A DNA stretch of 63,396 nucleotides, the filler included, from Olpidium bornovanus S191 (Eukaryota; Fungi; Olpidiomycota): assembly GCA_017911155.1 (NCBI GenBank). It is 30 parts of 30 records of this genome, joined end to end, with 100 filler letters (N's around TTAATTAATTAA, not from the genome) between each part and the next. Parts side by side here need not be neighbours in the genome. Positions count along the whole stretch, not along the records: positions 18,202 to 19,388 come from JAEFCI010002493.1; 29 more parts are not named here. One strand, written 5' to 3'. A program made the translations under genes and the position numbers. Position 1 is the stretch's first letter; every line of letters starts with the position of its first letter. Of this stretch, positions 3,334 through 19,388 are shown in pieces. The notes beneath the pieces are model-generated. The model made no database searches, was not told the origin of the DNA, and saw nothing but the letters and a program-made list of their open reading frames with translations.

Positions 3334-4579
3334 ATCCCCCGCCGCCCGCTCCCCGCGGGGCGGGCGGAGCAGAAACTGAGAATCTCCCCACCCCTCCACC
3401 TCCCGACGAATGCTTAAACTTATTTTTTTTGGGCGAGGACAAAAATGCAGCTCCTTTTTGTATCGCTTTATTTTTCGGTCAAATTACTGGGTTCCAGTGA
3501 CACAAAGTCTGAATCCAGGGCCGCTTGTCATGTTTCTTTTATCTTGTCATGAGCGCAATCTCGCTCTTTCACTGTGTAATTTCGGCTGCACTAATTGCGG
3601 AGAAAAAACATTCTTTTATTATTGGTCATTGCGCGATCTTCGCGTTTTTTTTACCTGCATGAGATTACCGGAACAAAAAAAAAAGAAATTTTGCCGATTC
3701 GGACCTCAATTGCGTAGTTTTGCGCAACCAACGCGCTAAATGTGGACAAAAAGAAAATTGCGCCGATTCGGACTTCNNNNNNNNNNNNNNNNNNNNNNNN
3801 NNNNNNNNNNNNNNNNNNNNTTAATTAATTAANNNNNNNNNNNNNNNNNNNNNNNNNNNNNNNNNNNNNNNNNNNNCATGATCGCAAATATATTAATCCA
3901 AAGCGTAACCACCGTAGATCGGCTCCTGAACTTGTCAGAAAAAGGGAATGGAGCTCAATTCGTCGGCCGCCGCGCTTCGTGCCCCGGAAATTAATCCGAA
4001 AACAGCCGCAATCGCTTACTGACGGCGCGCCGTGCCGTGCGGTGCGGCCCGGTTTCATTTACGCACCGCCGCGAACCCGGACGTTCGACGGCCCGAGCCG
4101 TCTCGGGCATATCCCGCCAGGCATCGGAGACGGCTTGCCTTGCCGGCTGATCACGCAACTTTTGACGAACGGCAAAATCGCGCGTGCGTTATAAACCACC
4201 GGCAGAAAGCGGCGGGGAGAAAAGGCGCAGTGACCGACGGCCTTAAGAAAAGCGGTGGAGGTCGCCGTTGGGGTTTGTGATACAGACGGGGAGGGGGTGG
4301 GGACGCGGGGGCAGGTGCGACGTCAGTCAGCCGCGCGGGGATTTTTCGAAAAGGTCCGCCCTTCGCTTTTACCAGATGCCCTCTCGTTTCAAGCGACGCG
4401 GTTCACGCGGGCTTTCTGGATGACCGCTGGCCGCTGCGTGCCTCGTAATTTCTTGGAGCGCTACCTCCTGCGCCGGGTTTGCCTCGCTCTCGCAGATGTG
4501 ACGCCGTGGGGGAGGTAAAGGAAAAAGGGGGTGAAGAAGGGCGGGGTAAGGGCGGCTTTGATGTGCAAAACGTGTGCCC

Positions 4580-4675
4580 TCCGCACACACGCACACACGC
4601 CCTCCGCACACACTCCCACACGCCCTCCGCACACACGCGCACACTGTACACACTCACCACACACACACACGCACA
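4580..4675. repeat. Degenerate (CA)n/(CACG)n microsatellite
   Basis: Runs of acacac/gcacac. Confidence 0.7.
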
Positions 4676-4979
4676 CATCCCATCCCCGAGCAAGAACGAA
4701 CTGAGTTAGGTGGGAAGTTTTTTTTTTTTTTTTTTTACTGCGGTAAGGGCGTTTAGGCACAAGATGTGCCCTGATTTTGTCACCTCGCGGCTCCAGTCAG
4801 ATACACCAGACCAGGACGGCCTTGGGGTCATTTTAAACCGCTTCGGCCGATTGGCTCTTCTCCAGTCTGATGTGGTTGCTCTCCGGTGTTTCTTGGGCAC
4901 CGTGGCTGTAAGCCGAAGGTGATCCTCCATTTTACGACTAGATCTCAGACGGTTAAATTAGCTTGATGTGCGCGTGACT

Positions 4980-4988
4980 TCACGTGAC
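4980..4988. promoter_or_regulatory. TCACGTGAC extended E-box (Cbf1/USF-type)
   Basis: Sequence TTCACGTGACC; function is inferred. Confidence 0.3.
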
Positions 4989-5899
4989 CTGGTGCGGTTA
5001 GACAGAAAGCCCGGTGTCACAGTTCAGGAATGTGTTCGGAACCCCAAAGCCGGCACAGGGTAGCGCGTCATTCCTAAAAGCCCAAAAGACAGAGACAATG
5101 CGGCACAGAAACGCCGATCCCTCTGCAGAGCGCAGTCTTCTTAGGCGTCATCTGGTAGCAACGCCTACTTTTGGCTTGCTGAATGCATTTAAAAAGGCTC
5201 AGGAACGAAAGAAACCAAGAGCCACGCTGTAGCAGTTCTTCAGAGCGAAGACTCCCGCGGGCGTAAAATTCTCTGTCGTGTCCCCTGTCAAAACCACATG
5301 CTGTCGCAGATCCGCAAAGAGGGCTTCCGCAGGTGTTGAGGCACCTCATCCCGAACAGTTCACAGCTAAGAAGAAATTTGAAATCTCGAAGAGCGAAATT
5401 GCTGCAAAAGGACAGGTCCCTGTGTATTGCCCGGCGCATCTGGTCTTACGGCACAGTCCTCTGGCAAACAAAGAGCCAAGAACTCCGCGCCCTGAAGCCA
5501 TCATCTAAAGCGCTTAACTTTGATCAAACATTGTGTGATTGCCACACAAAAGGAAGAGGAACCTGTGGGAAACCAAACTGAAATGGACCGGCCACGAAGA
5601 TTTCCAGGTAGACTGCCTGGGGGAGACAGATCGCAATTAACATCAGGGCAGGGTGACCTGTGAGTGACCAAACCCAAGGGTATTGCGTAAAGCTTGATTC
5701 AGGGCGAAAGCAAAGCTGAAGCTGAAAACAAAAAAGCCCGGACTTCTTATCATGGNNNNNNNNNNNNNNNNNNNNNNNNNNNNNNNNNNNNNNNNNNNNT
5801 TAATTAATTAANNNNNNNNNNNNNNNNNNNNNNNNNNNNNNNNNNNNNNNNNNNNCGCCCCCCCCCCCCCCCCCCCCCCCCCCCCCGCCGGCCCCCCCC

Positions 5900-5930
<31 letters not shown>

Positions 5931-5931
5931 T

Positions 5932-5974
<43 letters not shown>

Positions 5975-6002
5975 CTGTCTGCCCGACCTGGCGGCGAGGC
6001 GA

Positions 6003-9000
6003 TCATCAACCCTGGCTCCCGCCCCGGGCGCCTTTGCTGCGTCTCCCGCGCGCCTCGTCTCGACCGATGGCCTCGTCTCGCTGCTGCTGTCGGTGGCGAG
6101 CGACGCGGCCGTCGTCTCGTCGAAGCTCGACGACGGCGGGGACTTTCTCGCCGCGGTCGCGGAGATCAAAAACTCGGTGCTCGAGCGCAGGGCCGACATG
6201 ACCCGCATAACGGCGGACTGCGGCGGCGGCGGCGGCGGGCACCACCGCCCTTACGATCACCACGGCCGCGCGGACGGCGGCCCGGCCGCCGCGGCCGACG
6301 TCGTGAGGCACATGGAAATCCTCCACGCGAAGCTCTTCGTGTTGGACGAGAAGATCAAGAGGTCCGGCCTCTCACCCACATCCAATTTCCCCACCCCCAC
6401 GCATCCCTGCGAACGGAGGATTTCCCGAGGGTTACTTTCCTTTGACCGGCAATTTCCCCCCTCCTCCTTTCATTCCCTCCACCTCCCGTAATCCGGGCGT
6501 TTGATCCCACCGCAGCATTCTCAAGATCACGTTTGTCACATCGGCGGGAAGGCGGAGAAAGCTGGAAAGGAAAATGAAAGGACTACGAGAAGCGTGGAGC
6601 AACCTGGTGAGCACCTGTGCCTCCCAAGTGTTCGCGGACACACTGCTGAAACCCCCCCCCCCGGCGGGGACCCCTGAATGCTCGTGCAGGACGCCATCGA
6701 CCTTTCGCGCTAACCCGCCAAGGGTAAATTCCTCCGGTTTGATTGTTCTTATTCGTGGTCTTTTCACCGCACGGGGCGCAAATCCGCTTGAGGCGCCCAG
6801 ATGATGGCCTTGACGCACGCGCTCGCACTGGAGTCCGCGAGGCGGGCGACCCTGGCGACGGAAGACGTCGCGAAGCTGGCGCTGGCGTCGGGCCACCCCG
6901 ACTGGTCGCTCTTCGAGGCCACGAGCTCGGCGGAGCAGATCTTCGCGCAGGCGGAGCGGCGGCTGCTGGGGCTCGGCTGCCCGCGGGCGCCCGACGTCGC
7001 CTTCCGCCTTTTCCTCGCCGCGGCGAAGGAGGGCCTGCCGGAGGCGTGCGTCATGGTCGCCAGCATGTACGAGCGCGGCGTCGGCAGGCCCGCGGACATG
7101 AGCACCGCGATGTACTGGTACCGGGAGGCCGCCCAGAGAGGCAGCCCCGAAGCCTGGAACCACCTCGGCCGGATATACGAGCGCGGGAAGGGCGTGCCGC
7201 CGGACTACCAGAAGGCCGCCGAATGTTACCTCCGCGCGTCGGAAGGCCGGGATCTGGACGCCATGACGAACCTGGGTAGGTCTCCTCCGCGGCGGTATTA
7301 GTAAAACACGCTCGATTGAGATCTCGCATTTTCGTCTGTGGTCGGGATGATTTTTTTTTTCCTGACCAGAATCAAGCGAATTGGTCTTTTTCCCCCTTCC
7401 CTTCCCCGGCCCCCCCGTTTCCCCCGCAGGGTATATGCTTGAGCTCGGCATCGGACGTCCGGCAGATCCCCAGAAGGCGGCCGGGTGGTATCGGCTGGCC
7501 GCAGAGGAAGGGTACGCCAGAGCGCAAAACTGCCTCGGAGCGCTGTACTACTACGGACGCGGCGTGCCGAAGGACCCGGCCGAGGCGGTCGTGTGGTGGA
7601 GAAAGGCGGCTGACCAGGTAGGTCAGACGAGATGTTCCTCCCCACGCGGCGTTGTTCCGCCCCTGGAGGCCAGCCGTTTTTTTTTTGTTTGTTTGTTTGT
7701 TTTCTGCCGAAATGACCGTGGGCGCCCCGGGCAGTTCGCCCGCCGGCCAACCTCTCAACCTTCCCGCGCCCTCCTCCCGCCCCCCTCTTCTTGCAATCCC
7801 GCCTCAAGGGAAATCACCATGCGCAGAACAACTTGGGCATCTGCTACGAGGAAGGAACCGGAGTCGTCAAGGATTATGTGCTCGCGAAGCTGATGTATCA
7901 GGCGGCCAAGGACGGAGGGCACGCCAGCGCGACGAACAACCTGGGCTATCTCCTGTGGCTCGAGGGGCCGTGAGAAAATACCCTCCCCCCCCGAGTTCAA
8001 ACCTGGCTTCCCCCGCGAGGTTCGCGGCTTGACGGGAGACTGTTTTTTCCGCAATTTCTCGCGCGCGTGCTCCCCATTTACCCGTCGCCGCGCCCCAGCA
8101 CAACCACGCGGAGGCGTTCAAGCTTTTCAACCTGGCGATGTCGCTCGGATCCGTCGACGCGATATACAACCTCGGGTCGATGTACGACACAGGGTGCCAC
8201 GCCGGCCCGGACTCGGCCCGTGAGCCGGAGGTGGCCGTCCGGTACTTCCTCGAGGCCGCCCGGAAGGGCCTGTTCAAAGCGGTCCTGCGGGCGGGGACGA
8301 TGCTGACGACGGGCGACGGCTGCGAGCAGAACCCTGCGGCGGCGCATGCGCTGTACAGGCCAGGGGCCGAAAAGGTGTGTGTGTACGGGGAACGGGAAAG
8401 GGGAATGGGGCGGGGTGGATCTCAGCAGCGAGAGGAGCCGTGAGCGCTGCGTACGAAAAAAGGGTTCCTCCAGTGATGCGCGCGGAAATCGGAGGACGAC
8501 TCGCGCGCCACGCCGCTCACGCGGGAGATCTCTTGCCCGTCTTTTTTGCCAGGGCGACCCGGCGTGTCAAAACGCGATCGGAGAACTGTTTGAGCTTGGC
8601 CTCGGCACCAAACAGGACCTGAAAGAAGCGAGGCGGTGGTACTCCCGGGCCGCGGCCGGAAACGATCCCAAGGGCGCGTTCAACCTCGGGGCGCTGTACG
8701 AAACGGGATCCGGCGTCGAGCGGAACCTAGACCGAGCCGTCGGATTGTACTTGAAGGTCAGGGAGTGGGTCGCGGGGGCGGCGGACGAAGTCGGGCTTTC
8801 CCCTTTTTGTTGTTGGCCGTGTTGTTTTGTGACCACGTAATCGAACGGCAGCACAGGATCTGGCCAGAAATTTTGCAAACCTCTGAGTAGAGTCTCTCTC
8901 TTTTTCTCTTTCTATCGCGCCCGCTCGCTCGCTCTCGTAAGGCCGCGGAAGGAGGAAACGAAGACGCAAAGCAGCGGCTGCAGGCGCTGCAGAAGTACGC

Positions 9001-18201: not shown

Positions 18202-19388
18202 CATGCACCAGGCAATTGTCAAGGTGAGCATCGGCAAAGGGCACATCGGCCCAGACAAACTACGAGCGCGGCATCAACCGAGGGTTCAATCTCAAGGGTC
18301 CGTACCTTGAACGCTTACGACTCGGGCATAGTCGCCGACAGCAAAACGGGAGCGGCGTCACTGAGCCCACGGTGCACTCTTTGTCAGCCCCGACGTTGAC
18401 CGCGGCGTCTATATTAACAACCGACTGCCGCGGTTCCTCGGACCAGGCTCAACCAAGCGGTGTGGGCGCCACCTCCTGGTCGGCAGGGTCAAGGCGGCAC
18501 CCCATTCAGCCTACGGTACGACTCGATGTTCCGCAGGTGTAGCATCAGTTGGACAACCAACGTGTGACAGCGCGGGGCACCGTTTCCGCCCGAGGTAGCC
18601 CCTGAGATCCTCTGCGACACCGGGCCATGTTCACTGCGGGCGCGCCGGTGAATTCTCCGCCGAGCTGTTTGCCGCCACAGGAAACACCTGTGCCGTCAAA
18701 CCCGGCGCGCGCAAGCAACGGACGTGCTTCGACTTCAATCGACGCGTCACGGTCGACGTCTACTCTTTCCTGGTCTAGAAAGGCTGACGACCATGCAGCG
18801 GCAGATTGCTCGGCTGCAAAAGCGTCAGCCGGAGCAGGAGATGGAAGCGGAACCGGAGCCAGCGAAAGGCAGCGCCACGAGGAGATGCAGACGGCCGAGG
18901 AAAAAGGCGCAGGGAAAGAAATGGCGAGCGCGAAAGGCCAACCATTGACAAGCGCCTCAGCGCCCGTCACGATCGTGTGGAAGCAATCGTCCGGGGGGCG
19001 CACAAACGCCGTTGCCAACCATTGCATCAGGGAGCACGACCCCATCGTGCTGCCTGAGTTCTGATAACAAAGATGGTGCGGAAGCGACGGACGCAGGTAA
19101 AGCTGCCACTGCTGATGGGGAACGCGCTCGACGGGAAAAAACCACCCCGAGACGGGACGCTTTCGTTGCAACAAGACGACGCGGAAGGCAATGTAGAACG
19201 TCTCGCACTTTACGTTCCGGCAACGCCTCATTGCGAAGGCGGTCGCGGACACTCAGAAGCGCATGAGCATGGTGATCACGACGGAGGAAAAAACAACGAA
19301 GCAATGCCCGTACTGCAAATCCGTCCGCCACAAGATTGGCTGCAGCAAGACCTTCAAGTGTGACAGTTGTGGTTTTGTTTTGACGTTA
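18202..19388 (+). pseudogene. Fanzor2 / TnpB (IS200/IS605 OrfB)-like RNA-guided nuclease relic
   Basis: Stitched across frameshifts: TNYERGINRGFNLK; FSLRYD; TCAVKPGARKQRTCFD (RuvC-I, D site reads K, 18689-18706); VEAIVRGAH/NAVANHCIREHDPIVLPEF/ITKMVRK; KTTRKAM*NVSHFTFRQRLIAKA; ITTEEKTTKQCPYC...IGCSKTFKCDSCGFV (zinc ribbon). The contig ends GAC-GTT-A (D-V-N of RuvC-III) in a shifted frame. Confidence 0.8.

Follow-up and report, generated by a model that had tools for sequence, protein, structure and literature searches.

The contig described here occupies positions 18202-19388 of the window, by which the whole analysed stretch of 63,396 nt (filler included) from Olpidium bornovanus S191 is meant; it measures 1187 nt, contains no N and has a GC content of 59.6%. 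It very probably represents the decayed and truncated nuclease gene that an IS607-type transposon carried, of the Fanzor2 type within the TnpB superfamily and from a long-form (~680 aa) chytrid lineage. The longest open forward frame has at most 152 codons and the motifs are scattered over all three frames; their coordinates are summarized in Table 1. An earlier interpretation of the same DNA (the sequence-only reading) had proposed that a nuclease relic fills the whole contig and had named a frameshift-aware search and profile matches as checks; the proposal was borne out by both. Frameshift-aware local protein-to-DNA alignment (BLOSUM62, gaps 11/1, frameshift 14, stop -8) gave a score of 687 with the intact relative P0004 (193 of 428 columns identical) and scores of 620 and 610 with P0161 and P0163, respectively. 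The corresponding controls scored 52 (reversed protein), 40 (reverse-complement DNA) and 33-41 (six shuffles); the match to P0004 is far above chance. With tblastn, successive parts of the proteins of the P0004 family matched the piece in three different frames. About 250 N-terminal and about 25 C-terminal residues (including RuvC-III) are absent, as are the element ends, and the contig ends about 26 codons short of the expected stop codon.

The last stop-free piece (19197-19388, 64 aa) matched PF07282 with 27.3 bits against a curated cut-off of 26.3. This domain (Cas12f1-like TNB, formerly OrfB_Zn_ribbon) is the zinc ribbon of the TnpB superfamily and was found in all relatives. The NCBIfam models IS607_TnpB and guided_TnpB matched the same piece weakly, and the ten best ESM-Atlas clusters with a family assigned were all PF07282. 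The seven stop-free pieces upstream yielded no Pfam or NCBIfam match because they are too short and broken. Neither the piece nor the loci of five relatives yielded a match in Rfam. Two antisense ORFs, 18545-19252 (-) with 235 aa and 18957-19331 (-) with 124 aa, cross the pseudogene; neither has a Pfam match, and both probably result from the GC content of 60%.

Table 1. Features of the contig (window positions) and non-coding modules of related loci (positions within each locus). A2, family alignment of 15 members
Feature	Position	Strand	Remarks
Pseudogene body	18203..19379	+	Matches P0004 (686 aa) residues 249-661; both contig ends cut the gene
Ten frame changes	18230..19172	+	Near 18230-51, 18291-300, 18373-79, 18488-95, 18661-67, 18776-77, 18826-934, 19004, 19062-63 and 19157-72
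QTNYERGINRGFNLKG	18252..18299	+	Family motif QTNYExGxNxGYE; N18 and G22 invariant in A2; NYERGINRGFNLKG = 18258-18299, frame 2
FSLRYD	18505..18522	+	Frame 0; family F-x-I/L-R-Y/F-D, Phe invariant; beta-strand region ahead of the RuvC core
In-frame TGA	18565..18567	+	Trp at the aligned position of P0004
In-frame TGA	18649..18651	+	Nearly invariant Trp (W211 column of A2)
RuvC-I block CAVKPGARKQRTCFD	18689..18733	+	Frame 1; family SIDPGxRTPWTCFD; catalytic Asp -> Lys (AAA, 18698-18700)
IVLPEF	19044..19061	+	Pro 19053-55 on the canonical RuvC-II Glu position; P-E-F invariant in the family
In-frame TAG	19194..19196	+	Trp or Ser in relatives
EE of TTEEKTTKQC	19284..19289	+	Second Glu (19287-89) aligns with the relocated catalytic Glu of ApmFz2 (NEYLTTKTC)
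C4 zinc ribbon CPYC...CDSC	19305..19370	+	Intact; PF07282 E 4e-6 on 19197-19388
Non-coding module, about 90-98 nt	L001 7076-7166		
Non-coding module	L003 3654-3744		
Non-coding module	L010 4272-4357		
Non-coding module	L002 and L008 8628-8716		
Non-coding module	L012 5156-5243		
Non-coding module	L005 12300-12381		
Non-coding module	L013 4688-4775		

Frame-by-frame translation and alignment placed all motifs that the sequence-only reading had stitched together where it had located them, among them the Pro of RuvC-II, the Glu pair ahead of the zinc ribbon and the AAA codon of RuvC-I. At the DPG site the Pro-Gly is retained (18701-18706) and the Asp, nearly invariant in the family, is Lys, which is read as decay and not as the sign of another family; the aligned counterpart of this block in the mimivirus nuclease ApmFz2 is CGIDPGLRDFLTVY. 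The relic carries both the inert RuvC-II residue and the relocated Glu, in VLPEF and TTEEKTTKQC, respectively, both of which are invariant in A2, and Glu 19287 lies five residues ahead of the first Cys of the zinc ribbon. The stretch RVEAIVRGAH / NAVANHCIREHDPIVLPEF / ITKMVRKRR spans the frame changes at 19004 and 19062-63, and the TAG is flanked by KTTRKAM and NVSHFTFRQRL. The D-V-N reported for the contig end had to be abandoned: the two codons on which it depends follow CGFV in a different frame, the alignment extends only to 19379 and the Asp of RuvC-III is unreadable.

Relatives and their genomic settings

A phmmer search with the 64-residue piece against 1.84 billion cluster representatives yielded 179 matches at E≤1e-3, the best of which were long proteins (686-883 aa) with 55-65% identity; the nearest relatives have about 680 aa. 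Named relatives occur in Borealophlyctis nickersoniae (at least five divergent paralogues), Geranomyces variabilis, G. michiganensis, Thoreauomyces humboldtii and Rhizophlyctis rosea, and further ones in soil metagenomes. The scan of JGI metagenomes gave three loci only, two of them contigs already indicated by the protein matches. In the family, RuvC-I reads SIDPGxRTPWTCFD and two further motifs are invariant: VLPEF, which places Pro at the canonical RuvC-II Glu, and TTEEY-TKQ-C, whose Glu stands five residues ahead of the zinc ribbon. The four Cys of the latter follow, and then RD-x-VGAFN (RuvC-III).

In the relatives the nuclease is directly preceded by, or in the gene model fused to, an IS607-family serine recombinase that combines a MerR HTH with a resolvase (NF033518, E 1e-15 to 2e-20). 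In L001 the recombinase (4438-4989) is located 12 nt upstream of the nuclease gene (5001-7067), and in the gene models P0003, P0163 and P0016 TnpA is joined to the nuclease. The copies of Borealophlyctis and Geranomyces sit among ordinary eukaryotic genes (Zwilch, histone deacetylase, SH3, RCC1/WD40, pseudouridine synthase, mitochondrial carrier). The family therefore resides in the nuclear genomes of fungi and does not stem from contamination.

In a tree of 47 rows (database hits only, with X at every break in the relic) the copy fell inside a core clade of chytrid and soil sequences (SH-aLRT 98) as the sister of P0004 (94). An extended clade (support 100), at the level of which the tree is a polytomy, adds P0002, P0130, P0180 and Tilletia. 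The extended family is thus also present in many copies in a basidiomycete (smut) genus, as a more distant branch; the P0110 cluster (31 members of at most 887 aa, many of them fragments) comprises Tilletia controversa, T. laevis, T. caries and T. indica (L015 3001-5617, T. controversa).

Some individual copies show further peculiarities. The Borealophlyctis element copies L002 5779-8714 and L008 5702-8714 are 93.6% identical over 2.83 kb. The natural stop of L008 (8614-8616, VLL*) is Lys in L002 (VLLK), the frame of which continues to 8682, and the nuclease frame of L002 is split into two ORFs at about 7934-7948. The resolvase part starts past the catalytic-Ser motif, and the gene models fuse it with the nuclease. 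P0014 (3205 aa), in which 10 separate stretches match the 64-aa zinc-ribbon piece (E 5e-11), has the appearance of either an array of repeated TNB-like zinc ribbons or a chimeric gene model.

An arrival of the Olpidium copy with an integrated giant-virus fragment, or its membership in one, would be compatible with the Fanzor2-type assignment and is regarded as improbable. P0180 (636 aa, gene 6523-8433), a distant member of the extended clade, is encoded on L004 (JGI Ga0157370_10002347), a 22.8-kb soil contig with a GC content of 40% and dense short genes (BTB, F-box-like, two KilA-N, SET, GT25, NADAR), which looks like a giant virus. The nearest Atlas clusters of one of its KilA-N proteins belong to the Nucleocytoviricota with a score of 0.82, which is a lead only. 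Copies of the P0002 type adjoin an ankyrin gene, several ORFs without Pfam match and an ORF of great length. Giant viruses are on record from zoosporic fungi (PMC12247965). Against this origin, four scans of IMG/VR, queried with the piece, a profile of the family, P0180 and P0002, yielded no relatives; the copies in chytrids form a diverse set of paralogues flanked by host genes; and the polytomy concerns the very level at which the virus-like members join. A viral link of the family appears plausible, and the available genomic contexts are only suggestive of a giant-virus transfer.

Breaks, decay and origin of the contig

Each of the three references (P0004, P0161 and P0163) gave 10 frame changes, at approximately the same places, and three in-frame stops, at each of which at least one aligned relative has Trp. 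The sequence-only reading had listed at least five frameshifts and the TAG at 19194; the breaks and the TAG stand, the number of frame changes was an undercount and the TGA codons at 18565 and 18649 had been missed. Introns were considered as the cause of the frame changes and rejected, as each switch is local and of 1-2 nt, and no intron-sized stretch remains unaligned. The relic retains 40 of the 52 covered invariant columns of A2, and two of the 12 changed ones are Trp -> Cys. With 10 frame changes, three stops, Lys in place of the RuvC-I Asp and RuvC-III past the contig edge, it does not encode a functional nuclease, in agreement with the earlier view that the copy is dead.

A gene that is intact in the organism, and broken only by sequencing or assembly errors on a low-coverage contig, is very unlikely. 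The contig is short and the indels are as read from the assembly, which leaves some room for such errors. However, most of the frame changes lie outside long homopolymers, the three stops are substitutions independent of the indels, the Asp-to-Lys change at the catalytic site required two steps in the codon, 12 family-invariant columns are altered, and the end branch of the relic is three times that of its sister (0.89 vs. 0.29 for P0004). This long end branch within the core clade is a pseudogene signature, and the relic is neutral and without function, an ordinary transposon fossil.

The GC content exceeds that of the chytrid and soil relatives (46-53%) and the TnpB superfamily is mostly prokaryotic, both of which could point to a bacterial TnpB on a contaminant contig. 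Yet the close relatives are all located on chytrid nuclear contigs or in soil metagenomes, a long branch with a support of 100 sets the clade apart from other TnpB-like matches, and no relative was detected in 185,579 prokaryotic species genomes scanned with the patterns of the family; contamination is accordingly most improbable. Some zoosporic fungi, e.g. Allomyces, are comparably GC-rich.

Comparison with known nucleases

The profile of the family (not of the broken copy) was compared with the PDB and matched ApmFz2 (9B0L) with E 4e-21, Cas12f with about 5e-8 and TnpB with about 1e-4, whereas SpuFz1 (8GKH) gave no match at E≤1. Foldseek with the AlphaFold (AF2) model of P0004 (pLDDT 74, pTM 0.67) also returned 9B0L as the best hit (E 3.6e-16, TM 0.62 by target), with Cas12f at 1.7e-11 and without 8GKH among the top 50. 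In the HMMER alignment the IDPG of ApmFz2 falls on the DPG of the family and the Glu of its NEY on the second Glu of TTEE. The literature defines Fanzors and pro-Fanzor TnpBs by two features, DPG and a Glu shifted towards the C terminus (Yoon et al., bioRxiv 10.1101/2023.08.09.552727).

ApmFz2 (protein L79 of Acanthamoeba polyphaga mimivirus, from the IS607-type ISvMimi elements) shares with the family the DPG of RuvC-I, a non-acidic residue at the canonical RuvC-II Glu position, the relocated Glu just ahead of a C4 zinc ribbon, the RD of RuvC-III and an IS607 TnpA partner. It differs by its length (~500 aa vs. ~680 aa) and by Gly416 where the family has Pro; the family differs from it by another N-terminal part of about 250 aa and a Lys/Arg-rich linker, the aligned identity is about 16%, and the relic, unlike ApmFz2, is dead. 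The N-terminal ~150 residues of the family, which lie outside the window piece, are predicted to form long low-confidence helices; Lys/Arg-rich runs in them (e.g. KRKRK...KKVRRSKKLR), at residues ~40-155 in the model of P0004, look like nuclear localisation signals. Bacterial IS607 TnpB and pro-Fanzor TnpBs have both active-site signatures and the same type of TnpA, whereas the NCBIfam model IS607_TnpB matches the family weakly (15-27 bits vs. a cut-off of 350). ISDra2 TnpB (PDB 8H1J, 8EXA) has the same core fold of RuvC and zinc ribbon (Foldseek E 4e-10), in contrast to its canonical RuvC-II Glu, its tyrosine-type (HUH) TnpA of IS200/605 and its length of ~400 aa.

The dead relic is assigned to the Fanzor2 type because of the IS607 recombinase of the relatives, the motifs and the best solved match 9B0L, and its position in the core clade agrees with this. 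The sequence-only reading had reached the same assignment partly for a wrong reason, as it took Pro at the canonical RuvC-II Glu for a mark of Fanzor2 and Gly for one of Fanzor1; ApmFz2 itself has Gly416 at this position (bioRxiv 10.64898/2026.06.23.733943), and Pro versus Gly therefore does not discriminate between the types. SpuFz1, from the chytrid Spizellomyces punctatus, resembles the family in its host, its rearranged RuvC and its similar length. An affiliation to Fanzor1, which is on record for chytrids, Spizellomyces among them, would suit the length of the family, which is near that of the 633-aa Spizellomyces Fanzor1 SPu-1-1p, and the list of Bao and Jurka (2013), in which chytrids have only Fanzor1; it is nevertheless excluded, but for a very slight residual chance, because of the TnpA type and the sequence and structure rankings, in which ApmFz2 came first and SpuFz1 did not appear. 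Fanzor1 is carried by eukaryotic transposons with terminal inverted repeats, not by IS607 (Bao and Jurka 2013); such transposons also have target-site duplications.

Putative 3' RNA module and significance of the family

In the relatives, the 94-108 nt from the stop codon to a boundary at '...ATAGGTG' are conserved about as well as the best-conserved coding DNA, even between copies whose proteins are only ~50% identical. Conservation drops off abruptly past this boundary, and the similarity between the Borealophlyctis copies L002 and L008 ends there as well. A covariance model (R1) with a nested structure of four helices was built from seven copies; it retrieved the module of L013, a locus outside the model building, with 39 bits (E 1e-7), and its match on the giant-virus-like contig L004 was weak (E 0.39). 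In an alignment of nine sequences, which are few and were fitted to R1, 81% of the cells pair, versus 38-54% with slid partners, nine pairs change on both sides and the covariation score was reached by none of 500 shuffles. From a plain MAFFT alignment of the 3' regions RNAalifold recovered a 3-bp helix only, and single-sequence folds were no more stable than those of shuffles, except for L004 (z -2.2). The module is thus at most a candidate for the 3' part of an omegaRNA. In a Borealophlyctis subclade (L013 3544-4775; P0009, P0007 and P0008) about 1.1 kb separates the end of the nuclease core from the RNA-like module; gene models render this stretch as a long protein tail in which Ser, Lys, Glu and Asp abound.

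By analogy with TnpB and Fanzor2, an intact element would be an IS607-type transposon moved by its serine-recombinase TnpA. The 3' end of such an element would be transcribed into an omegaRNA, which its nuclease would bind and presumably be guided by; the nuclease would cut DNA adjacent to a TAM, using a rearranged RuvC site made up of the Asp of DPG, the Glu five residues ahead of the zinc ribbon and the Asp of RD. Such cutting may bias the retention or the spread of the element, which would be its role in transposition.

According to Saito et al. (2023), Fz2 is widespread in fungi. The papers and supplements that were searched, some of the latter being partial, contained no mention of Fanzors from Borealophlyctis, Geranomyces, Rhizophlyctis or Tilletia. 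The relic is a new, dead member of a known nuclease type, and its long-form family may be undescribed. We tentatively suggest, as a possibility with somewhat less than even chances, that a long-form (~680 aa), IS607-linked Fanzor2 lineage, of which the searchable papers gave no description, is common to chytrids of the Spizellomycetales and Rhizophlyctidales, to Tilletia and to giant-virus-like contigs, and has its own structured 3' RNA module of ~98 nt that ends exactly at the element boundary; its intact members (e.g. P0004, P0162 and P0166) could be active RNA-guided nucleases, with giant viruses of zoosporic fungi as their vectors.

The relic itself is ordinary, and the intact members of the family are the part worth following. 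Its value lies in having pointed to a coherent family in early-diverging fungi, which includes intact members, is partnered by an IS607 transposase and carries a conserved RNA-like module at the 3' end. Families of this kind are candidates for genome editors adapted to eukaryotes, and they bear on the movement of IS607 elements between giant viruses and fungi.
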